Positions 987 to 64,000 of a DNA stretch of 64,000 nucleotides are shown piece by piece. The notes under the pieces are model-generated. The model was given only the letters and a program-made list of their open reading frames with translations, was not told where the DNA came from and did not search any database. Source of the DNA: Podarcis filfolensis. Its lineage: Eukaryota. How positions within the stretch are numbered: the stretch's first letter is position 1; each line of letters starts with the position of its first letter. Made by a program: the position numbers and the translations under genes. The stretch lies in assembly GCA_964270895.1 (NCBI GenBank), contig OZ185439.1; one strand, written 5' to 3'.

Positions 987-3045
987 AATATTTCCCGCTT
1001 CCTTTTCTGTCCTTGTTAATGATTATGCATTGTGAATCTTCTTGGTACTTTAAGATTGCAACTGATTTCTTTTAGGTCAACAGTGAGCCTGCAGAGGGTG
1101 CTTAGGGTTTGGGGAATCATTAAAAACACCAGGATGAAAACATCAGAATGGGGGCTAGTTGGTACTAGCTGCCAACAATACAGTTGCAGCTGCCACAAGG
1201 AACAGGGTTGTTTAGGATTTATCAGCTGGCAGATATGTTGTCATAGTAACCCAAAGCAAGGCTTTAAATCTCCCTCAGTGCACAAAAGGGTAAGCCTCTT
1301 AGCATCATCTCTTTCTCACTCATCTTCACACCAAACTTTCCTAGCGATTGGAGACTGCTCAATAATGGTAAACTCAGGTGGCCAGTGCTGACAGGACTGT
1401 AGCCAAAATGGGGCCACTGAGAATCAATTGCTTAGTACAAAAGAAAGAAAGAATAAAACCATGTTGGGGTAATCCACACCCAACCACTCCAAAAAACAGC
1501 CAAAACAGGACGGAGCATGCTCAGTAGCAACAAAATTAAAAACTACAAATTGGAAAAGTAAAAGGAATACTGGTGGGATAGAGAGGCGAGTGAAAAATCT
1601 TGCTTGGAGGGAATGGCTGACTGAAACCCTAAACAGGAACATTTCTTTTAGGGCGGAAGATAGGCTTCAAAATTTTGTTGTATTTGTCCTGGTGTGGAAA
1701 CAGGCAGGTTTGCAACTACTATAGTTGCAGATCGCCAAGAAACACCCTTAGGAATGAGATGGTGTCGCTTCCAGCAAGGCCTGCACTTGCACCTTTATTT
1801 GTCTGCACACTTGCCGTCTTTGCTTAGCCCTACAAGTGGCACACATGGCATTTTCATCCAGATTTTGGTAAGGGCAGTTATTCTTCTATCAAAATACTGG
1901 AGACTATAAACTTGCCCTGTATTAAATAACTATAATAGATTCTTTACTTGCTTGAGGAATGTGTGAATGTATGTGGCATTATATAGGGGAGAAATGTATG
2001 GTCCCTACCTTCTCAGAAGCACATGAAATTAAGAAGAAAGCACATTGTGCAGGAGAGGACAATGGTCCTCAAACTGTGGTCTGCAGGCTTCATTCAGCTG
2101 GTTCATGGAATGATTGTAGACAAGGACAAGGGGTGGGCATTCTCACTCTACAACATCCCTGAGCATGGCAGCCTCAAACCCTCTACTCCCAATCTTCCCA
2201 CTTGAGCATGAAAGTCTGAAAGAAGCTTCTCAGCATGTTCAGCTAAACATTCTTAGAAGCCTCCACACAACTGGGAAACCTGGTAATTCACAACTTCAGA
2301 TTGCAAGAGGGCATTCGGCCAAACATCTGAACTTTGTACTAAGTGTGTGAAGTCTAGGAGTGGAGAGGGCAGGACCAGTGTGTTTTGGGGTGGGGTGGAC
2401 ATTAAGGTAGTGGCACATTCATCCCAGGCCCCCAACACACTTTTTGCCCTTGCATGTTCAGGCTACATATCCAAAGGGGACGACTTGTGATGAAGTGGAG
2501 CTTGTCGAGAGCAGGGAAACTAGGATCCAAGAGGGAAGCTAGACTAGCATTCACTCAGTCAAAATGATATCAGGTAAATGTAAAGTACCCTTTAAAAGGA
2601 ACAAGTTTAAATTTTCAAGATTACGTAATATAAAAATGTGTTGTTTGGCAGTCTGTTGTTATGGCAATACATTTAGTAGGCCAACCAACATATTGCACAA
2701 TAGTGCACAAGCTCTCAAGTTCTCCAGAACTCTTGATTAGACTAGATGGCTTAACAGTCTTCCAAAAAATGACAAAAGGTTGCTGTACTTCTTTTTCATT
2801 TTGGCTGAAGAGCGGTACAAAATTATTTAAGTCAATAAAATTAAGTTTCTCTTCAGCCATGCCCATGTTCTGCATTATCAACTTGTACATTTTGTAAATA
2901 TAAAATAAAACAATCATCAGGTATCATTATGAGGGGATTATAGCTTAGACACACTAGAAAACCTTGTAAATGGTCCAAGCATTCTAATTTTGTTATTTTT
3001 CTGTTGTGAACTGCCCTCAGCTCTTCATATGAAGGGCGGTATACA

Positions 3046-3090
<45 letters not shown>

Positions 3091-3094
3091 TATT
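3046..3094. repeat. (ATT)n microsatellite
   Basis: About 16 perfect units. Confidence 0.95.
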
Positions 3095-3499
3095 CAAGTG
3101 GTGGTGAGGGCTGTGGGGAAGTATAAATCTCCCAAGCATAGGCATTATCTGGGCGTACCCATATCTCCAGCATGGACCATCCTCCAAGTAGCAGAATGTG
3201 ACGAACACTATTTCAGGGAGCAATCGTTTCTGTTAGAGCTCAGTCTGAATCCCCTTGGCTTTGGTCTTATTCATAAAACTCCTCATATACATTCAGAGGT
3301 ATCTTGTTCTTCCTCTTCAGAGGAAGAGGCCCCAGATTTCTCCCCCCACCCCCGCGTTTTCAGGAAACTAATTTTGAAAAGTACAGTTCTTGTGTTGCTT
3401 TCATACTGTTAAACCTTTGTCTTATAGTGTGGTCTGTTGACTAGATACAAATAAATGAATCTAAATCTCAGCTACTCACTATGTTGTTGGTATTTTACC

Positions 3500-3850
3500 C
3501 AGAGGCAACTATACATGTAATTCAGCATGTGCCAATTTGTGTGATGGACAATGCAATGCTCCTGCTCTCAGGTGCCAGTATTTCAAGATATATTGTTGTG
3601 CCTTATGCAGGGAATATAGCAGATTCACTGTATTCTTTTTGGAGCCTGCTAAAAACATTCCTGTTTAGACAACCCTACCCAGTTCCTTAGAAATAATTTT
3701 ATTAGAAGTAATTTTGATATGTTTTAGTATTTTAACTTGTGCATGTTTAAAGTAGGTCTGTAATTCTTCTGCTTTATATTTTGTAAACCACTTTGAAGGT
3801 TGTTGTTTACAATCAAGCTATGTATAACTTTTATGAAATCCTAATAATAA
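3500..3850 (+). mobile_element. L2-like LINE 3' fragment
   Basis: gcctgctaaaaacattcctgtttagacaaccctaccc ... gtaaaccactttgaaggttg..caatcaagctatgtata..taataataa; a similar short tail at ~2995-3045 precedes the (ATT)n. Confidence 0.55.
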
Positions 3851-4911
3851 TATCCAGGGAGGCAGGGACTGTCCAGTAATACAGCCTTCTTTAGGCTAAT
3901 CTTCTGAACATGATAAATGAATATGACTGGCTGTCAAATACGACTAACTCCTGAAATAATACTTGGTTAATAACTCTGTGTGTAAAATTATTGTGAGGGT
4001 ACTTAAAGCTGCCAAAATGTGCATAGCAACCAACTGGAAGAAGGCAATTGCTCCATCAGCTTATTTGTTTCATTTCATTTCATTTCAATCCCACATTTCT
4101 ACCAAAAAAGGCTCCCAGAGTGACTTATGAATCTCAGTAATAACCACATTAAAAACACATTACGTAAGGGAAAGTGTTGGGGAAGAATGTGATAAAAAGC
4201 ATACTGTGGCACTGTTTCTTAGCTACAGAAAATATATTTGATGCATATATGACCACAATCCAAATTTTACAATGTTAACCACTTCTAAATTGTATGGAAT
4301 TTTTTGACAATTGACAATCACAATTAAAATAGCGATTAATAGGCAACAGGTGTATATCTCTATTGAAAGATGGGACTTTTATTTGCAGGATAAAGCCATA
4401 AAGAAGGCATAGATTATATGCTTTGGTAGTTAAATTGGCCGCTGCTTTATTTTTGACTTTGCAGAAGATTAAAGGTAGACAATCATGAGTTACTATGTAA
4501 ATAACAATAGCAGGTTAATCATCACATTCAACTCTGGTTCCCTGGACAACATTTTAAAAACTGAGGCGGAAGCCTATGGTCCTGCTGGCCAACCTAAACA
4601 TTTTGTGGATGAGTTGATCTAGCGTAGGGTTTGCCATATCTGAAGAAAGCTATGCACTATCTTCTCCTCAAAAACAGAGAACCCGAGAGCAAGGCCAGGG
4701 ACAGGGCTGGTGTGTGGTGCTGTGCTCTCCTGAACACGCTTGCCAAAGACAAGGGTCAGCCTTTAAGAAGCCAATGTTTGGAAGGCTGCTTGTGCATTGC
4801 TGCCAGCATGTAGGCTTTGTATGGAAGTGCCCTTCTTGTTGAAAAATCTGATTAAGAATCTGTTTTGAAGTTTGTCCCCTTCTCTCCCCCCCCCCTTTTC
4901 TTATTTTTCAG

Positions 4912-18729
<13,818 letters not shown>

Positions 18730-57919: not shown

Positions 57920-60449
57920 AGGGAGAAGATACTTGATATACAGCTTGCTATAAGAAGAGTTCTGTCCTTTTTCTATGCACTAAACTTGCTTGTATGGAAG
58001 AGCATTCAGACAAACATGCAACCAGAAATGATGCATCAAATCTTGATGGAAAACAAAGCCCTTTGACATCAACTCATTTGAAGGTGCACAATCACTGCCA
58101 GTTAGGTGACAAATCACCTTTGAAGGAGTTCTTCTCAGCACTGATCAAATGATGGGCACTGTGAGCAGCACCTTTGAAAATGCACTATCTGTGGTGAACT
58201 CCCATAACACAGCTGATTCCAGATCCACCTTTACCCTAGAATCACATATGAAGTTGGGTATTGGGCAAATGGGTGTGGTTTGGGAGAAATGACCTTGCAG
58301 GGCTAATTAGGCTCAGAGACCGGACATTCCCCACCACTGCACCAGAAACTGGTCTCTGAAAAAAGCTGACATTGTGTTCCAACAATAGCCGATGGTTTGC
58401 TGTCCTGACTAGACAAATTCTCGGTTAAACACACAGGGCAAAGCAATACAAATACTGACATTTATAACTTAGAAGCAACCACAAAATATAGATTCAGACC
58501 ACCTTCAGAGAAATCATAGCCAAAAGGTGTGCCCGCACAATTTAAACTAATTTGTTCAAGTATAGCCTATTAGCCACTTATGACTGTCAGCCAGATGCTT
58601 GACAAACCATCTATTTTCACTGCCTGACCCAGTCTGCAAAAATGGGGGGGGGGGGTCAAGCACCTGGCAGGCTATGATAGAAGGCATGAGGTTGTGTTTG
58701 GTTTGGTGAACCACCACAAGTTGTGAAGGAAAAAGGAAAAAAAGAATTTACCTAAAGACAACAGGAGATGGACCACAAAATTTGTGAAGGGTTTTCTTTA
58801 TGTTGTCACTTAATGTAGATTCATCCAAGTACCAGGTGCTTTGATCTGAGGCAGAGGGACCGGCAGTGGGATCTTAAGAAAAAAACAGATACATTTTTGC
58901 ATATGTTTCTGTAAGTGGTTTATCTTCCCCATTTACCCAGAGTGGCAGGTGAAAGAGTACACCTGAGCTTCATTCCAAATATATTTATGTTTTTTTAAAA
59001 AAAATAATTTTTATTAACTGGCCAATCACATCAAATTAAATCACATCACATAAATTCCAAATTACAAAGCCAAATTTTTAAATTTTGTTGGGGGAACCCA
59101 TACTTCAAGATCCAAAGGGGGATTCAGATCATCTTCTTATTACTGCGTTAATGTCCAAATCAGTCCCAATCAGTCCAAACAAAATTCATAATTCTATCCA
59201 GTCTTATCTTGGTGTTTTCACATCATATCTTGTTCATATAATTTCTATTTCTACGATCTCTTCTGTTAGTCTCCTTAAGCCGATAAGCAAAATAATAATC
59301 CTGTGTGGATTTCCCGTTCCTCCACTAAGTCCAGACGGTTTCCATATATCTCCTTCGTAGATAACATCGCTCTTTCCATCATAAATTTGGCATTTGTCGC
59401 TCTTAAGTTCCACCGAGAAGTTAATCCACGATATGTAAACAACTCTATTTCTCTCTTTCTCCTCCCAGACCCAAGAGCTCCAACAATGCCTCCCAAAATG
59501 GCGACGGCATTTTTAACTGCGTCATTCTAAAACTCTTAGCTTTCCAGCTTCATCTTGAAACATTGCTTTGGTTCGAAAGTTTATCTCCACACAGCCTTAA
59601 ATCCACAGCTTAAGTCCTTAGTTTCTGACTCATTAGGGGAGGGGATTCTTGTTAAATCACATAAGAAAAAGGAAGGCAGGTTTTTCCCCCCCTCCCCCCT
59701 CAGTCATACCGTATCTTGACGTATCTTCTCATATTTTATTCTTGTCTTGTTATCAGAGATCTCTTCTGTCAGCAGTCTTTACTCCCCTTTTTCCTTGAAG
59801 CATGTGCAATTTATCTCGTCCAAATTGTTTCTTTTGAAGATGCTTGCAACTAGCGGCGCGAATCAGGGACGGCGTCCAGGAGTGCCGGAATCCCACAGGA
59901 GGGCTTTGTGCCTAGTGCCCCCACCCCCACAAATTCGGGGGTGGTATAGGGCACAGCAGGCAAGAGCCGTCCCCCCCACAATCCTGGGGGGGGTTAAGGA
60001 GGCTAATTACCCCCATCATAGCCTCCAAATTACCTCGTGTGGGTCCGAGAGATGTTATTGTCAGCCATCTTCTGATGCGCCACCTAGTGGCCCCCCCATT
60101 CCAAATATATTTATGAAAGCTCAAACAAAACTGTACTCTCATCCCAGTGGTACCACATGGTGGATTAAAAGAAACCCTAAGAAAATAATGTTTCATTTCT
60201 CACCACTCATAAGCCAACAGGCCAAGAGGATTCTCTGTTTATTCTTTCGACTGTGCTGCCCTCCCCCTTACCAATCACAGAGCACAATGCCCTAGCATTT
60301 CAAAAACAAAGTTTGCCTATTTGAAAGCTATTATTTATATTAACATACAGAATTCCGGTAGAGTTACCTGGGGCTCCACATACAGTATTGATAGCAGTGG
60401 ACTGAGAAGAGAGCAACTCATCCAGCAAACGCTGAGCAGTAGGAAGGAT
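23048..60449 (-). CDS. ZSWIM8: ZSWIM8 (zinc finger SWIM-type 8; TDMD E3 ligase adaptor), spliced CDS, 5'-partial (21 exons)
   Basis: complement join(60449-60368,58872-58752,50769-50568,50256-50081,49035-48027,47048-46917,45912-45733,45483-45300,44313-44215,43946-43822,42599-42365,41706-41554,37886-37664,36817-36528,34422-34199,32166-31684,31011-30843,28821-28648,25095-24976,23998-23820,23251-23048) = 4764 nt, phases consistent, all GT-AG. Peptides such as ILPTAQRLLDELLSSQSTAINTVCGAP and YIHHRLIHLTPADYDDFVNAIRSARSAFCLTPMGMMQF match recalled vertebrate ZSWIM8. Confidence 0.96.
23820..23998 (-). CDS. ZSWIM8: ZSWIM8 exon (179 nt) GVNYVHQFC...QRCQQAYIQ
   Basis: ttctgcag|GT ... CAG|gtatgt. Confidence 0.95.
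24300..24689. mobile_element. MITE remnant (hAT-like right end) with an internal hairpin
   Basis: Ends ggcccaaaaaaggttagccatccctg; 52 nt hairpin at 24582-24633; left end unclear. Confidence 0.5.
24976..25095 (-). CDS. ZSWIM8: ZSWIM8 exon (120 nt) GMLALEMLGRRAHNDHPNNFSRSPPYTEDVKWLLGLAAKL
   Basis: ccctgcag|GA ... TTAG|gtaagg. Confidence 0.95.
28648..28821 (-). CDS. ZSWIM8: ZSWIM8 exon (174 nt) IGSVHAGSTFPAIQG...HLHSAYRV
   Basis: tttctccag|TA ... GTTG|gtaagg; tandem CAG/TAG acceptor. Confidence 0.92.
29719..29778. repeat. (ATT)n microsatellite
   Basis: About 19 units with one interruption. Confidence 0.95.
30843..31011 (-). CDS. ZSWIM8: ZSWIM8 exon (169 nt) GVHPAFIGAQYPYSV...LSSNVA
   Basis: cctttgcag|GGT ... 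GCAA|gtgagt. Confidence 0.94.
31684..32166 (-). CDS. ZSWIM8: ZSWIM8 exon (483 nt) DNLMLEKACLAVEEAAKGGG...VPGSAYPQ
   Basis: atattgcag|GAT ... CAA|gtaagt. Confidence 0.95.
32303..32554 (+). mobile_element. tRNA-derived CORE SINE, Squam3-like
   Basis: gccagtgtggtgtagtggttaagagc (A box) ... gggttcgcgtc (B box), CORE-like tgggtgaccttgggccagtcac, 3' gcgggatatcaaatccaaac(tct)n. Confidence 0.9.
34199..34422 (-). CDS. ZSWIM8: ZSWIM8 exon (224 nt) GQAMEIGSAAL...ALVQCKEQ
   Basis: gtttctag|GG ... CAG|gtgagc. Confidence 0.95.
35088..35188 (-). mobile_element. MIR-like ancient SINE fragment
   Basis: gggaaactga..gacttgcccag..ctgggatctgaactc resembles the reverse MIR core. Confidence 0.4.
36113..36250. 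mobile_element. hAT-like MITE left-end fragment
   Basis: caggggtggggaacctccag..ggccaaat terminus; a related right end ccggacattccccaccactg occurs near 58320-58339. Confidence 0.45.
36528..36817 (-). CDS. ZSWIM8: ZSWIM8 exon (290 nt) YKGRRPESHAPHVPNQ...SSHVSWIT
   Basis: cctttcag|G ... ACAG|gtagga. Confidence 0.95.
37145..37380 (-). mobile_element. L2-like LINE 3' fragment
   Basis: aaacacatttaaaaggcc..aatcagccaaatgcctggttgaagaggaacgtttt; near-copy at 56880-57100. Confidence 0.6.
37664..37886 (-). CDS. ZSWIM8: ZSWIM8 exon (223 nt) MASIDSSAPETTSDSS...AKTVEVGR (Ser-rich)
   Basis: tgttgcag|GA ... GCAG|gtaaga. Confidence 0.95.
38285..38880. mobile_element. Two degenerate L2-like 3' fragments in opposite orientation
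   Basis: + strand: gagagaggactttt..cacctttaggcaacaggtgaag..ggccttg; - strand: aaaagcatggataaaaagaaatgtcttcac..gggaaggaaattttcacag. Confidence 0.45.
38978..39358. mobile_element. hAT-type MITE with an 8 bp TSD
   Basis: caatatat|cagggatgtccaa ... ctggccacccccctg|caatatat; TSD at 38970-38977 and 39359-39366. Confidence 0.85.
39665..40135 (+). mobile_element. CR1 LINE 3' fragment
   Basis: YCVQFWVPHFKKSLGKLQLVQGKAATMVSSMENRFYEERLKNL..LAWRR matches the CR1 ORF2 C-terminus. Confidence 0.85.
40205..40585 (-). mobile_element. CR1 LINE fragment
   Basis: Reverse complement gaatactgtgtacagttctggtcacccca (EYCVQFWSP); degenerate downstream. Confidence 0.7.
41554..41706 (-). CDS. ZSWIM8: ZSWIM8 exon (153 nt) DNPQRSPCDPPMEP...EGKVPSRLALG...KKKHT
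   Basis: ttttcccag|AT ... ACAG|gtaact. Confidence 0.93.
41857..42111 (-). mobile_element. tRNA-derived CORE SINE, Squam3-like (second copy)
   Basis: Reverse complement closely matches the 32303 copy; long (CTT)n tail at 41857-41877. Confidence 0.9.
42365..42599 (-). CDS. ZSWIM8: ZSWIM8 exon (235 nt) ILDKLLDRESQTHKPQ...EKSSQ
   Basis: gtttaaag|ATC ... CAAG|gtatga. Confidence 0.94.
42945..43720 (+). mobile_element. 5'-truncated L1/Tx1-type LINE 3' end (ORF2 C-terminus plus 3' UTR)
   Basis: [53 protein letters not shown]: the Cys/His C-terminal motif of non-mammalian L1 ORF2; followed by AATAAA and an A-rich tail. Confidence 0.85.
43822..43946 (-). CDS. ZSWIM8: ZSWIM8 exon (125 nt) MKTTVSEAEHPLLCEG...DQSKLKK
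   Basis: ccttccag|GC ... AAA|gtacgt. Confidence 0.95.
44215..44313 (-). CDS. ZSWIM8: ZSWIM8 exon (99 or 84 nt) (VVSPT)GSRPPSRNWNNEMPGDEELGFEAAVAAL
   Basis: Two in-frame acceptors (exon start 44313 or 44298); donor CTTG|gtgagt. Confidence 0.93.
45300..45483 (-). CDS. ZSWIM8: ZSWIM8 exon (184 nt) VKLAYQESEIVALLKK...FDVLCTP
   Basis: cacacag|GTA ... CCAG|gtaaag. Confidence 0.95.
45733..45912 (-). CDS. ZSWIM8: ZSWIM8 exon (180 nt) GKKNKVSTSKQTW...PPASTKALE
   Basis: tcccacag|GGA ... GAG|gtaagt. Confidence 0.95.
45970..46134. mobile_element. Tigger-like MITE right-end fragment
   Basis: Ends in aaccaaggtaccactgTA, the same terminus type as the 49128 element; left end not recognisable. Confidence 0.55.
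46917..47048 (-). CDS. ZSWIM8: ZSWIM8 exon (132 nt) ILFACAEALYAHGYSNEAC...DLKVEQPPTK
   Basis: cgtttacag|ATC ... AAG|gtacag. Confidence 0.94.
47495..47650 (-). mobile_element. Old tRNA-derived SINE fragment; related tail piece at 49488-49612
   Basis: gatgctagggactggaccaaggacc..tctgcatacaaag..gtgctcta is the reverse of a tRNA-like head; degenerate. Confidence 0.45.
48027..49035 (-). CDS. ZSWIM8: ZSWIM8 large exon (1009 nt) RRDLCTQLRQWQLKVI...LEQENRME, with acidic low-complexity region
   Basis: aattctag|G ... GAG|gtaagg; lies inside the 351 aa ORF 48006..49061. Confidence 0.96.
49128..49346. mobile_element. Tigger-like MITE (219 bp)
   Basis: TA|cagtggaacctcaggctacg ... cgtaaccggaggtaccactg|TA; imperfect TIRs, TA TSD. 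Confidence 0.85.
50081..50256 (-). CDS. ZSWIM8: ZSWIM8 exon (176 nt) ITGWWYSVRTSASHSS...DPTISPH
   Basis: ctctctcag|ATA ... CG|gtaggt. Confidence 0.95.
50568..50769 (-). CDS. ZSWIM8: ZSWIM8 exon (202 nt) DVNSMYLSSTEPPAAAEW...QCLTYEQ
   Basis: atttcacag|T ... CAG|gtacta. Confidence 0.95.
52599..53291. mobile_element. Tc1/mariner (Tigger/pogo-like) MITE inserted in the DIRS YR gene
   Basis: TA|cagtggtgccccgcaagacgaa ... ttcgtcttgcgaggcaccactg|TA; TA duplication at 52597-98 and 53292-93; repeated cgcaagacgaa subterminal motifs. Confidence 0.9.
56880..57100 (-). mobile_element. L2-like LINE 3' fragment inserted in the DIRS gag region
   Basis: aaacacatttaaaaggg..ttaatcagcccaaggcctgattgaagcggaactttt; similar to 37145-37380. 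Confidence 0.6.
57857..57920. repeat. Compound (TG)/(TA)n(GA)n microsatellite
   Basis: Seen directly. Confidence 0.95.
58752..58872 (-). CDS. ZSWIM8: ZSWIM8 exon (121 nt) DPTAGPSASDQSTWYLDESTLSDNIKKTLHKFCGPSPVVF
   Basis: ttttcttaag|AT ... TTTAG|gtaaat; absent from the ORF track, found by manual translation. Confidence 0.95.
58990..60096 (-). mobile_element. Non-autonomous L1-type retroposon (about 1.1 kb, no intact ORF)
   Basis: 19 bp TSD cattccaaatatatttatg at 58971-58989 and 60097-60115; - strand starts GGGGGGCCACTAGGTGGCGCATCAGAAGATGGCTGAC and ends AATAAA...A7. Confidence 0.85.
60077..60090 (-). promoter_or_regulatory. CTCF consensus motif CCACTAGGTGGCGC
   Basis: Matches the CTCF core CCASYAGRKGGCRS at all 14 positions; binding untested. 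Confidence 0.55.
60368..60449 (-). CDS. ZSWIM8: ZSWIM8 exon (82 nt) ILPTAQRLLDELLSSQSTAINTVCGAP
   Basis: cacacacag|ATC ... CCAG|gtaact; most 5' ZSWIM8 exon found in the window. Confidence 0.95.
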
Positions 60450-61874
60450 CTGTGTGTGAGAAAAACATTTAACACTGACTGTCTCTCCCATGAGTTAGAT
60501 CTATTAAAAATTATCAAAAGGTGTGCTATCAAATCAAATTTCTCACTAGTACTTCATCTATTTCCAAAACAATGCATACAACCCAGTTCACCAAAACGCT
60601 TAAATATATCAATCTGCAGCTAGAGAATTACCGTGATAAATGTGTTTTGCATGATTATGTATTTTATATTTTTACTAATTTTAGAAAATATTTCATGGTA
60701 TAGTACTTTATTAAATGCATAATGCTGCTTGTTATGTAAGTCAGAAGCAAAGGCTGATAGTTACTGGATGAAATAATTTATATTTCTAAGATGAAAAGAA
60801 GCTCCTTGTTTAGAATGCACAAATATTCATAATTTAAGGAACAGTGCTCGGTTTTCAAAGAAACTTCAACTGGTTCAGAACACTAGTTGCTAGACTGAGA
60901 TGTGGAGCAGCTAAAATGGATCTTATCTTGGCAATACTCAAATAATTTTATGCACTACAAGCTTGTCTTTGGGCACAATTCAAATTCGCAGTTTTAATTG
61001 TTAAAGTTTAAACTCATTAGGGCTGGGGTATCTGAAGAACAGCATCATTCCATATGAACCAGTCTGATTTTTGCTCCCTCTAGTAAGGTCCAACTCTGCC
61101 CTTATCTTTTGAGGGTCTCTGCAGTAGTGGTGCTTCAGCTATGGAATTCCCCTCTCCTTTATGTTCACCTTGCATCAAATATGCTAACTTTTAAGTACGT
61201 TTCCGTTTTCCTGGGCATTTAGCAGTGTATGCAGTTTTTTAGGCACTCTGATTTCAAACTGGTGTTTATTTGCAGCTAGTTGTTTTTAAAGTAGCCGTAT
61301 TCAGAGCTTTTTTTCCCCCAGCCAGAATGCATCAGAACGCAGTTCCAACACCTCTCCCAACACCACAGCTCTGGCTCATGAAAAGACTCTCCCTGGAGCG
61401 CAAAAAGGACACGCGTGCTATCAACCTTTCCTACTCCCCACAATCCTATGATTCGATGGCTAGCCCACCGGGCTGCACTTCTAATGCCAGGCTGCAGGAG
61501 GGAGCAAAATGCCGCCGGGCTTACTGGCAGTTCTGCACAGAGGTGCTTTAAGTCAGCGGAATGGAACTTTCATGTTTCAGGTGCAGCCCATGGGCGGCAA
61601 ACCAGCTACTCACGAACGCGGAGCTTTACTCGGCGCACATGCTTCCCCTAAGCTGTGCTGAGGTGCCTTCTTTCCAGGCTGCGACTGATGGCAGCGGAGC
61701 GCTGAACCGTCGCGTGTCTCTGGGGTTCACACCAGGATTTCCTTTTTGCCTGCTTGGTCAGGCTGGGAAGCAAACTTTTGAGGGGAACTCTCTCCCATCG
61801 CCATGGGTAAGTGCAAGATCCTCCCTGGTAGGGGACACACAGCGGAGGGCATAGGAGACTGTTTTGGTTTTTAT

Positions 61875-62010: not shown

Positions 62011-62220
62011 TTCTTGAAGGGAAATTATCAAAACGGCCATGTTGTCTGGGAGTAATTCCCTTTTTCATGATTTCCCAAACAAGGATATTGCAAACTTTTA
62101 CCTTTCAATAAAAAGTTGTTTGTATCATTGAGTGCTCTGTTATTGTGTTTTTCTTTTAAGACAAAATAAGTTAATGTATGAGTTGTTTTTTTCTAAACTA
62201 AAACCTCAGTATTCAGGTTA

Positions 62221-62971
62221 CCGTATTTTTCGCACCATAGGACGCACTTTTTCCCCTCCAAAAATGAAGGGGAAATGTGTGTGCGTCCTATGGTGCGAAT
62301 GCAGGCTTTCGCTGAAGCCTGGAGAGTGAGAGAGGTCGGTGCGCACCGACCCCTCACGCTCTCCAGGCTTCGCACACCTCTCTGCAAGCAGCGGGAGCCC
62401 AGCGCTGGGCTCCCGCTGCTTGCGGAGACTTGCCTGCATGGCGAAGCCTGCGCGCGCTGAACTCAGCGCGTCCAGGCTTCGCGGACCTCTCCGCAAACAG
62501 CGGGAGCGCTCCCGCTGCTTGCGGAGAGTTGCCAGCATGCCGAAGCCTGCGCGCGCTGAGATCAGCGCGCCCAGGCTTCGCGGACCTCTCCGCAAACAGC
62601 GGGAGCGCTCCCGCTGCTTGCAGAGAGTTGCCAGCATACCGAAGCCTGCGCGCGCTGAAATCAGCGCGCCCAGGCTTCGCGGACCTCTCCGCAAACAGCG
62701 GGAGCGGTCCCGCTGCTTGCGGAGAGTTGCCAGCATGCCGAAGCCTGCGCGCGCTGAGATCAGCGCGCCCAGGCTTCGCGGACCTCTCCGCAAACAGCGG
62801 GAGCGCTCCCACGGCTTGCAGAGAGCTGCCTGTTTGGGGGCTGGGGTCGGGGGAAGCTCGAGCTTCCCCAGCCCCGCGCCTGGGGGGAAAATAATTTTTC
62901 CCCTTTATTTCCCCCCCAAAAAACTGGGTGCGCCCTATGGTCCGGTGCGCCCTATGGTGCGAAAAATACGG
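62221..62971. mobile_element. Tc1/mariner (pogo-like) MITE with an internal 99 bp tandem array
   Basis: TA|ccgtatttttcgcaccataggacgcac ... gtgcgccctatggtgcgaaaaatacgg|TA; 27 bp TIR with 1 mismatch, TA TSD. Confidence 0.9.
62382..62820. repeat. 99 bp GC/CpG-rich minisatellite (about 4.4 units)
   Basis: gcggacctctccgcaaacagcgggagcg recurs at 62481, 62580, 62679 and 62778; a degenerate first unit starts at 62382. Confidence 0.95.
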
Positions 62972-64000
62972 TAAATTGCTGTGTTGGCACTTTGTGATAA
63001 ATAAGTGGGTTTGGGGTTGCAGTTTGGGCACTTGGTCTCTAAAAGGTTTGCCATCACAGTTCTATGGGCACTGGAGAGGGTCTTCTCATGAGCCAGAGGT
63101 GCACAGTGGGGCTTTAATGAGGCTCTTCAGCCTCCCAGGCTAACAGCTGTCCCACAGGAAGAAGCCTTCCTGTGCCTCAGCTCTGTAAGCCGCCCTGCCT
63201 CTCCTGCACATGCAAGCAGAAGGGACAAGGCAGCTTGCAGAGCAGATGTGCATGGAAGAAGCTTCTCTGAGCATCTGCTCTGCCCCTTCACAGAGCTGCC
63301 CTGTCCCTCTTGCTTGTGCGCCTTTCTTTCCTGCATCATTTATTCTAGAAAAAAAGCACTAGCTGCATTCCAAATATGCTATGATCCAGCACAATCCTAT
63401 GCATATTTACTCAGAATATAAGGCCCAGTGTTCAATGAAGCTTACTCCTCATGAAAGAGTGCATAGGATTGCAACAGAAATGTTGGTTTAACTTTACAGT
63501 ATTGTGTTTCTGCCAGCCACATTTGCAGTAACCAAACATTTCAATTCAGAAGCCCTGCTCTGGGTACCTCTCCTTTCAAAAGTGAGCTAAATGGCAGCTG
63601 GAGGTAGGGCCTTCTCAATGGAGGTGCCTCAGTTGTAGCATACTCTTCATAGGAACATAGCAGGTGCCAGCTTCTTTAACTGTGAGTCAGATGTAATACA
63701 TTTTTTATTCTCCCATGCATTGGCTGGATCATTTATTTTTTGCCACCACACCCTACAGTTTCCATTCTTATTTTTAACATCTTGTTTTATCAGACAGTAG
63801 CTATGTCTGGGTTTCTGTTGTTAGCTACCCTGAAAATCTTGCTAAAAGGTAAATACATTTTATTAAAAAAACTTTTTGAAAAATAATTGCACACTACACT
63901 TGAACCCAATCCTAGTTAGCACATGCCTTTCATGCTTCTATTTACTCAAAATCTGCATACCACATGTTCTGGTGTAAACACACTAGCCAAAGGAAGCAGT

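Follow-up and report, generated by a model that had tools for sequence, protein, structure and literature searches.

The 64-kb window of Podarcis filfolensis DNA analysed here (64,000 nucleotides) carries, on its minus strand, a segment of about 1.1 kb enclosed by two identical short sequences, and this locus raises the question of what kind of element was inserted, by what means it multiplies, and what the transcription factor motifs at its head might do. The segment is probably a recent and complete member of a non-autonomous retroposon family, high in copy number and non-coding, with a unit length of ~1.1 kb, which would be transcribed by RNA polymerase II and mobilised in trans by L1-type machinery. 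The family occurs in P. filfolensis and close relatives.

Extent, insertion site and coding capacity

The retroposon copy is 1,107 bp long (58990..60096, minus strand) and lies between perfect 19-bp target-site duplications (TSDs). The duplicated sequence, CATAAATATATTTGGAATG, is found exactly twice in the window, as the 5' copy at 60097..60115 and the 3' copy at 58971..58989 (both minus strand), with 0 occurrences expected by chance. The element opens with a G6 run (GGGGGG, 60091..60096, minus strand), the presumed transcription start, the length of which varies by about one G, another copy stopping at 60095 (contig loose end in X2). Read along the minus strand, the 3' end consists of the polyadenylation signal AATAAA (59015-59010), AATTA, T8 and A7, the T8-A7 tail occupying 58990..59004 and the signal lying 13 nt ahead of the A tail; a second AATAAA is located at 59735-59740 on the same strand. 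In another copy, A15 directly follows AATAAAAATTATTT (X2 contig loose end at 59002). The nick site on the primed strand is TATTTATG/AAAG, a T-rich/A-rich junction rather than the TTTT/AA consensus, and this single site appears to fit the L1 preference only loosely. An earlier note, made from the letters of the window, had described a retroposed unit with a perfect 19-bp TSD, a G-run start, AATAAA and an A tail, all of which is borne out; the CpGs that it placed in the 5' part are present there but not confined to it, 28 of them being spread along the whole element at an observed/expected ratio of 0.58, against 0.20 in the flanks.

The insertion lies in sense orientation in a coding intron of ZSWIM8, which it lengthened from ~369 to 1,495 nt. 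The upstream host exon (60368..60449, minus strand) encodes ZSWIM8 residues 247-273, 27/27 identical to PDB 9rwz_N (E 9e-11), and is followed by its donor GT at 60367-60366; the downstream exon (58752..58872, minus strand; residues 275-313, 38/39 identical, E 6.5e-21) is preceded by its acceptor AG (58874-58873), which the TSD lies 97 nt away from. Both exons meet in a spliced joint in X15, a spliced-RNA run from another species, and it is this GT..AG joint, together with the lack of depth in the intron flanks, that identifies X15 as RNA. In X5, a run from a sister species, contig 25 (1,951 nt, flanks ~2.6% diverged) connects 58952 with 60097 through 16 intervening letters; since these letters are diverged flank, the X5 site retains a single TSD copy, corresponding to 58971..58989, and no element. 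The insertion is therefore recent, the sister species having a precise empty site.

The first 247 nt of the element (59850..60096, minus strand) form a G+C-rich domain (GC 0.58) with C-run/G-run hairpins, predicted to fold strongly (-122 kcal/mol, z = -4.8 against shuffles), within which a 37-nt direct repeat is found (59914-59950 and 59963-59999, minus strand). The earlier note saw no meaningful open reading frame, and this holds: in the sense direction no stop-to-stop piece exceeds 92 aa, the next longest being 83 aa, and a Pfam search with eight translated pieces gave no match, Transposase_22 included. A PDB search returned no relevant match and none linking the element to a reverse transcriptase, endonuclease or ORF1p, and a HMMER search of a 1.84-billion-protein library returned only the ORF of another copy and one spurious multi-CUB protein. 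No reverse transcriptase, endonuclease or ORF1 domain was found in any piece of at least 85 aa in the 64-kb window. Lacking coding capacity, the element must be mobilised in trans, which supports the earlier proposal to that effect.

SINEs transcribed by RNA polymerase III have a head derived from tRNA, 7SL, 5S or snRNA, an internal Pol III promoter, and usually a length under 600 bp. Searches of the element found no tRNA and, at E up to 1, no Rfam family; an internal T5 run and the length of 1.1 kb disfavour Pol III transcription, and a Pol III SINE was rejected for a unit of 1,107 bp with these properties. Membership of the HAL1 (half-L1) group by a retained ORF1 was likewise discarded, since none of the ORFs is longer than 92 aa or matches Pfam. 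L1-dependent non-autonomous retroposons, for their part, have TSDs of ~7-20 bp and a 3' poly(A) after a polyadenylation signal, lack a reverse transcriptase and endonuclease of their own, and occur as many dispersed copies with different flanks; the element agrees with them in each of these traits.

A high-copy family and the origin of its ends

In X1, a deep DNA run of P. filfolensis, contig depths add up to 0.47-1.03 million within the element and to ~90-130 in its flanks, which match with 0-1 differences; the ratio of ~4,600-10,000 implies a family of several thousand copy-equivalents, summed contig depth not being, by the tool's own warning, the same as copy number. The 5,797 X1 contigs aligned to the element include 37% at an identity of at least 99% and 75% at at least 95%, and hundreds of loose ends lead into unrelated flanks. 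Depth drops exactly at both ends of the element and is flat from the 3' end to the 5' end, collapsing at 60096, so that the copies have one common 5' end and are not 5'-truncated. Among the positions listed, only about 7 set this copy apart from nearly all contigs, and it lies less than ~1% from its family. Common X1 variants at 59184, 59247 and 59686, and a 1-nt deletion at 59986, each account for 20-50% of depth, and internally deleted forms of the family are present among the contigs. The family is found at differing divergence in at least four organisms, and in X15 its summed depth is 100-2,300, a figure to which copies inside other transcripts could contribute, contigs being unable to reveal the starts, ends or strand of RNAs. 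The multi-copy nature that the earlier note proposed to check has thus been found: copy-equivalents of the same length number in the thousands, begin at a common 5' base and have other flanks, and the sister species has an empty site.

These data bear on several alternative origins. The combination of 1.1-kb length, TSD and A tail is typical both of the 5'-truncated 3' end of an ordinary L1 and of a single processed pseudogene, but either origin is extremely improbable. Truncation is argued against by an even depth that extends to the same 5' base in thousands of copies, and by the finding that a copy so close to its family (less than ~1%) has neither an ORF2 C-terminal reading frame nor homology to one; the ordinary truncated L1 that the earlier note set against its own reading is accordingly contradicted by the fixed 5' end and the absence of ORF1/ORF2 homology. 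A lone pseudogene is at odds with the high copy number, and a processed pseudogene, understood as one or a handful of copies of a spliced cellular mRNA whose parent gene bears introns, was rejected on the thousands of copy-equivalents and the lack of protein homology. A uniform 5' end and a poly(A) tail would also be expected if one or a few cellular non-coding Pol II genes with an external promoter had been retrocopied thousands of times, giving copies that were inactive from the outset and whose CTCF and YY1 motifs simply derive from the transcript start of such a gene; transcription of daughter copies from heads of their own is, moreover, presumptive. Such an origin is nonetheless unlikely: the common variants and internally deleted forms in X1, together with the differing divergence across organisms, fit several active sources over time, and a Pol II transcript of 1.1 kb that carries no promoter would be exceptional in giving rise to copies by the thousand.

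A closer connection to L1 is a refinement of the retroposon family explanation rather than an exclusive alternative to it. In its strict form—an internally deleted L1 with the head of an L1 5' UTR and the tail of an L1 3' UTR, as the earlier note read it—it is conceivable, though we consider it somewhat doubtful. In X5 and X15, depth over the outermost ~75-105 nt at either end is 3-10 times that of the body, with 28,495 in the X5 tail bin and 14,252 in the head bin against ~1,500-6,000 inside, and there are X15 contigs which match only 59003-59108 (tail) or only ~60020-60093 (head) before running into unrelated sequence, as expected of modules common to other repeat families. The order of a G-run and then a GCCAT-type box also mirrors the way in which human L1 begins (PMC11602158). 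Against this, the Pfam, PDB and 1.84-billion-protein searches revealed no remnant of ORF1 or of the tip of ORF2, and within the one long open stretch copies differ by indels whose lengths are not divisible by three. The terminal excess is, furthermore, only 1.2-1.5-fold in the same-species run X1, and a higher divergence of the body between species, if present, could also give the depth profile of X5 and X15.

CTCF and YY1-type motifs at the head

Directly after the G6 run, at element positions 7-20 (60077..60090, minus strand), lies CCACTAGGTGGCGC, which matches the CTCF IUPAC core CCASYAGRKGGCRS as no other site in the 64 kb does (0.03 expected). It is followed by ATCAG and then AAGATGGCTGAC, and a YY1-type box with a GCCAT core, AAGATGGC (GCCATCTT on the opposite strand), occupies element positions 26-33 (60064..60071, minus strand). 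The full CTCF core match and YY1-like motif noticed earlier at the head are hence confirmed as motif matches. The GCCAT core of the YY1 box has been described as essential (PMC11602158). As the bare 8-mer AAGATGGC is no commoner in the window than by chance (4 found, 3.25 expected), it is the position of the head box, and not the frequency of the 8-mer, that is suggestive. Further inside, in orientation opposite to the head box, a long YY1-type consensus, CGCCATTTT within GTCGCCATTTTG, is found at 59495..59503 (minus strand). This internal site is the only occurrence of CGCCATNTT in 64 kb, 0.97 being expected, and it is one base off the mouse L1 Tf motif GTCGCCATCTTG and the Peg3/Xist motif GCCGCCATTTTG (PMC11602158).

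Among the differences listed, none with a share of at least 20% falls within 60047-60096 in any of the four runs. Under the mechanism proposed below, each new copy would be expected to bring with it the consensus CTCF motif (positions 7-20). This motif may belong to the promoter of the element and, going by motif matches, its copies could add candidate CTCF sites to the host genome; a literature search for a lizard CTCF binding map tied to repeats found none. The chances are about even that the 14-mer acts otherwise, through another factor, through silencing by CpG methylation, or in RNA structure only. The support for CTCF is the motif match, the motif of this young, CpG-retaining and presumably methylated repeat contains a CpG, and GGUGGCGCAUCAG pairs with CUGAUUCGCGCCGCU ~220 nt downstream in the predicted fold. 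On the other side stand a perfect 14-nt core match that is unique in 64 kb, the lack of a frequent motif variant across the four runs among the differences listed, and the binding of repeat-borne CTCF motifs in mammals (PMC3368268).

Proposed mechanism and comparison with known systems

For the L1-mobilised Pol II retroposon that we favour, transcription would be performed by RNA polymerase II from a promoter within the first ~250 nt of the element, the GCCAT-type YY1 box at +26 directing initiation to the G-run in the manner of human L1. Cleavage and polyadenylation of the transcript would take place at the element's own AATAAA, and an autonomous L1-type LINE would then supply the endonuclease and reverse transcriptase that copy it into new sites in trans by target-primed reverse transcription. 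A driver of the L1 type is suggested by the length of the TSD together with the AATAAA and A tail.

The lizard element resembles SVA and other mammalian L1-dependent Pol II retroposons in being non-coding, about a kilobase in length, and equipped with AATAAA, poly(A) and a TSD of ~15-20 bp; like the SVA-type retroposons, it is present in thousands of copies and must borrow the enzymes of a LINE. Unlike SVA, however, it has neither Alu-like, VNTR or SINE-R modules nor a 5' hexamer repeat; what it has instead is a compact head bearing motifs for CTCF and YY1. Its host is a lizard and its driver a presumptive one. With the mammalian HAL1 it has in common a retroposed unit without reverse transcriptase, L1-style ends, and termini possibly common to other families, but HAL1 retains ORF1, whereas the lizard element has neither ORF1 nor any other recognisable ORF and L1 is only a candidate ancestor.

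The spreading of CTCF motifs has been described for rodent B2, dog and opossum SINEs, with binding shown by ChIP (PMC3368268). The lizard element is, like these, a young, lineage-specific, high-copy retroposon with a CTCF core motif. Those SINEs, however, are short Pol III units with the motif inside the body and ChIP-shown binding, whereas the lizard element is 1.1 kb long and of Pol II type and has its motif, a candidate binding site, at the extreme 5' tip beside a YY1 box.

The 5' UTR of human L1 starts with a G-run, followed by a YY1 site at ~+13. YY1 places the transcription start of L1 (PMC11602158), and the lizard element agrees with the human start in having a G-run at +1 and a GCCAT-core box nearby in the same orientation. 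The lizard box, in contrast, is located at +26 rather than ~+13, with the CTCF consensus wedged between G-run and box, and the likeness seen between the two starts is one of architecture.

Boundaries and coding capacity of the element

The 1,107-bp minus-strand insertion at 58990-60096 belongs to a genuine retroposon family that is non-coding, young and present in many copies. At its two ends stands the 19-mer CATAAATATATTTGGAATG, found as exact minus-strand copies at 60115-60097 and 58989-58971 that stand 1,107 bp apart (60096-58990); the 64 kb holds no further copy of this 19-mer even at two mismatches, with 0 expected by chance. On the minus strand the 5' end reads GGGGGG, followed by CCACTAGGTGGCGC, ATCAG and AAGATGGCTGAC, and the 3' end reads AATAAA-AATTA-T8-A7. 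The earlier note, a first reading from sequence, had described a perfect 19-bp TSD, a G-run with a full CTCF core match and a YY1-type box at the minus-strand start, and AATAAA with a short A tail, and each of these features could be read directly at its place. The CpG-containing 5' part that it had also described does contain CpGs but is not where they end, since 28 CpGs run along the full element (o/e 0.58 vs 0.20 in the flanks). The first 247 nt are G+C-rich, with a 37-nt direct repeat and C-run/G-run hairpins, and their predicted RNA fold is far better than that of shuffles (z = -4.8). The nick site of this copy, a single site, is TATTTATG/AAAG, which is T-rich/A-rich and differs from the L1 consensus.

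The longest sense stop-to-stop pieces reach 92 and 83 aa. Eight such pieces from both strands gave no Pfam match, and phmmer searches of the PDB with the two sense pieces of 92 and 83 aa brought up no relevant structure, the chance-level matches alone being an L,D-transpeptidase (E ~1) and a designed Kelch repeat (no stretch passing). A word search with a 125-aa antisense piece returned nothing, and one with the 92-aa sense piece returned solely P0001, the 57-aa ORF of another copy (98% identity). When the 92-aa piece (59237-59512, minus strand) was searched with HMMER against 1.84 billion representative proteins, P0001 and P0002 alone were matched, the latter a bacterial six-CUB secreted protein (E 1e-6) whose score is the sum of five weak repeats; this match was judged spurious, as the piece has no Pfam CUB match of its own and no CUB protein of a vertebrate scored. 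Indels of 1, 2 and 4 nt separate the copies within the sole long open stretch, which together with the absence of protein homology identifies the element as non-coding and agrees with the earlier reading that it has no meaningful ORF.

Several familiar identities can be set aside on these grounds. No L1 ORF1 or ORF2 remnant was seen in the element by Pfam, PDB, word or large-library protein searches, and the element is not a truncated L1; nor, with thousands of copy-equivalents and no protein homology, is it a lone processed pseudogene. ARAGORN found no tRNA in the element and an Rfam search with a limit of E = 1 matched no family, so it has no small-RNA head; as it also carries an internal T5 run and is 1.1 kb long, a Pol III SINE is excluded. 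In the window's 148 longest stop-to-stop pieces Pfam matched no RT, EN or ORF1 domain, which leaves the window without an L1 partner. One metagenome scan looked for the exact 31-nt head and another for its degenerate CTCF-N5-YY1 form, each with 0 matches.

Copy number, subfamilies and age of the insertion

Public sequencing runs were aligned to 58400-60700 as a test of copy number, blastn of the element having found no second copy or related repeat elsewhere in the window. Contigs of X1, a deep DNA run, match both flanks at 0-1 differences, so that X1 evidently comes from the same species. Word depth in the flanks is ~90-130, and summed depth within the element is 0.47-1.03 million, a ratio of ~4,600-10,000 which, summed contig depth not being copy number, was read as copy-equivalents in the order of several thousand; with 1.1 kb per copy the family would total a few megabases. 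The 5,797 X1 contigs on the element divide into 2,137 at >=99% identity, 2,234 at 95-99%, 1,179 at 90-95% and 247 below 90%. Depth in X1 is level from the 3' to the 5' end and drops exactly at 60096 and 58990, from which it follows that most copies are complete and begin at a common 5' terminus, a feature that distinguishes them from 5'-truncated L1 copies. With copies in such numbers and with sharp common ends, the multi-copy status that the earlier note had only supposed is confirmed.

Another copy, in the public run X2, stops at 60095 and continues into an unrelated flank, and an X2 contig carries A15 directly 3' of AATAAAAATTATTT, showing that the family is polyadenylated. The copy in the window has about seven listed differences from nearly all contigs (59218, 59336, 59409, 59423, 59528, 59965 and 60046) and thus lies within less than ~1% of the family. 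Several variants in X1 make up 20-50% of the depth, and copies with internal deletions also occur there (joints 59154>59449, 59286>59564, 59647>59758 and 59153>59193), which together indicate subfamilies, shorter ones included. The family is also present in organism C, a sister species, where the depth ratio is in the hundreds to thousands, and in organisms B and G.

The age of this particular insertion is bounded by a 1,951-nt contig of X5, a run from organism C, that spans both flanks at ~2.6% divergence and joins 58952 to 60097 with 16 letters between. These letters correspond to 58953-58970 in diverged form, and a single copy of the 19-mer follows them. The contig is a precise empty site and organism C does not have this insertion, so that the insertion is either younger than the split of the lineages or still polymorphic.

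An insertion within a ZSWIM8 intron

A contig of 3,916 nt from X15, a run from organism G, joins 58872 to 60368, and the ends of the skipped stretch read CT..AC on the plus strand, equivalent to GT..AG on the minus strand. The two flanking minus-strand exons were matched one by one, not as a spliced model, to ZSWIM8 in PDB 9rwz chain N: the exon at 60449-60368 is identical to residues 247-273, and that at 58872-58752 covers residues 275-313 with 38/39 identical. Further ZSWIM8 exons lie downstream on the minus strand, with the TPR and C-terminal domains at ~48.0-50.9 kb. The element therefore sits in sense orientation within a coding intron of ZSWIM8 that is 1,495 nt long, and as the insertion accounts for 1,126 nt, the ancestral intron would have measured ~369 nt. 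From the TSD end to the intron acceptor there are 97 nt. This copy brings into the short intron a CTCF motif along with two AATAAA signals in sense orientation, which may alter the processing of ZSWIM8, a highly conserved gene. The window also has pieces that match heparan sulfate N-deacetylase and sulfotransferase domains, which look like an NDST-type gene beside ZSWIM8, and upstream of the two ZSWIM8 exons lies a G+C-rich stretch at 62200-63000 (GC 0.67-0.69) with long open frames on both strands and weak repeat-type Pfam matches.

X15 is recognised as an RNA library by its spliced exons and by a depth of zero in the intron flanks. Its summed depth on the element is 100-2,300, so family sequences are present in RNA, although contigs do not reveal whether such RNA begins at the 5' base of the element itself.

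Head motifs, mobilisation and wider meaning

The 14-mer at element positions 7-20 is a perfect match, in fixed orientation, to the CTCF core CCASYAGRKGGCRS, of which the 64-kb window holds n=1 match vs 0.03 expected. Behind the G-run, at +26 to +33, AAGATGGC carries the YY1 GCCAT core on the opposite strand. The bare 8-mer is about as common as chance would give (4 found, 3.25 expected), and the position alone of this YY1-type box is suggestive. In the human L1 YY1 site the GCCAT core has the same orientation. A further YY1-type motif match, GTCGCCATTTTG, lies in mid-element at 59495-59503 on the minus strand, its orientation being the reverse of that of the head box; it is the one instance of CGCCATNTT in 64 kb and differs by a single base from the motifs that PMC11602158 quotes for mouse L1 Tf and for Peg3/Xist. 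Among the differences listed for four runs, none that is frequent falls in the first 50 nt. By its motif match the CTCF sequence is a candidate site, and methylation could block binding because the motif holds a CpG and the young repeat still keeps its CpGs. In rodents, dog and opossum, CTCF sites that SINEs carry are bound (PMC3368268), and no report of repeat-borne CTCF spread outside mammals was found in the literature.

The family is most likely an L1-dependent retroposon, a reading based on the fixed 5' end, AATAAA, poly(A), the 19-bp TSD, thousands of young copies lacking enzymes of their own, and presence in RNA. L1 alone among the squamate LINE clades is known to give poly(A) tails together with TSDs of such length. 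Transcription by Pol II would proceed from a promoter downstream of the start, inside the element, because daughter copies could otherwise not act as sources, yet the subfamilies suggest several sources. The GCCAT box may help to fix where transcription begins, a role that YY1 has at the 5' end of human L1 (PMC11602158), and an L1-type ORF2 protein would then copy the polyadenylated RNA in trans. That the ends of the element descend strictly from L1, as the earlier note had proposed, is somewhat doubtful. The terminal bins of X5 and X15 are 3-10 times deeper than the element body, and X15 contigs match just the last ~105 nt (59003-59108) or the first ~75 nt (60020-60093) before continuing into other sequence, a profile expected if the termini are common to other repeat families, so that head and tail may be shared modules. 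However, the terminal excess in the same-species run X1 is only 1.2-1.5-fold, and stronger between-species divergence of the element body would give a similar depth profile.

A more far-reaching reading, and an unlikely one, would make the head a compact internal Pol II promoter that recruits YY1 with CTCF, or its germline paralogue CTCFL/BORIS, so that transcription begins at the G-run. In rising to thousands of young copies, the family would on this reading have spread lineage-specific CTCF sites of defined orientation through lacertid genomes, and a part of these would form boundaries. No lizard family of this kind was found described in the literature. In wall-lizard assemblies ~12% is unclassified repeats, and the Repbase library accounts for only 6% (PMC10214862); the family may be part of this unclassified ~12%, and it is plausibly undescribed.

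The family widens the picture in which lizards host diverse L1 parasites, and it lets one ask whether retroposon transcription uses CTCF together with YY1. Thousands of near-identical young copies, if each is headed by a perfect CTCF core, would offer a clean test in a reptile, and since insertions differ between sister species, as in the ZSWIM8 intron, the origin of new CTCF sites and boundaries can be asked about outside mammals. Repeat-driven CTCF spread is known from mammals alone, where it proceeds via Pol III SINEs (PMC3368268). If the promoter and CTCF-seeding reading were true, the family would be the first case outside mammals of a CTCF expansion driven by repeats, and also the first in which the carrier is an L1-dependent Pol II retroposon and not a Pol III SINE.
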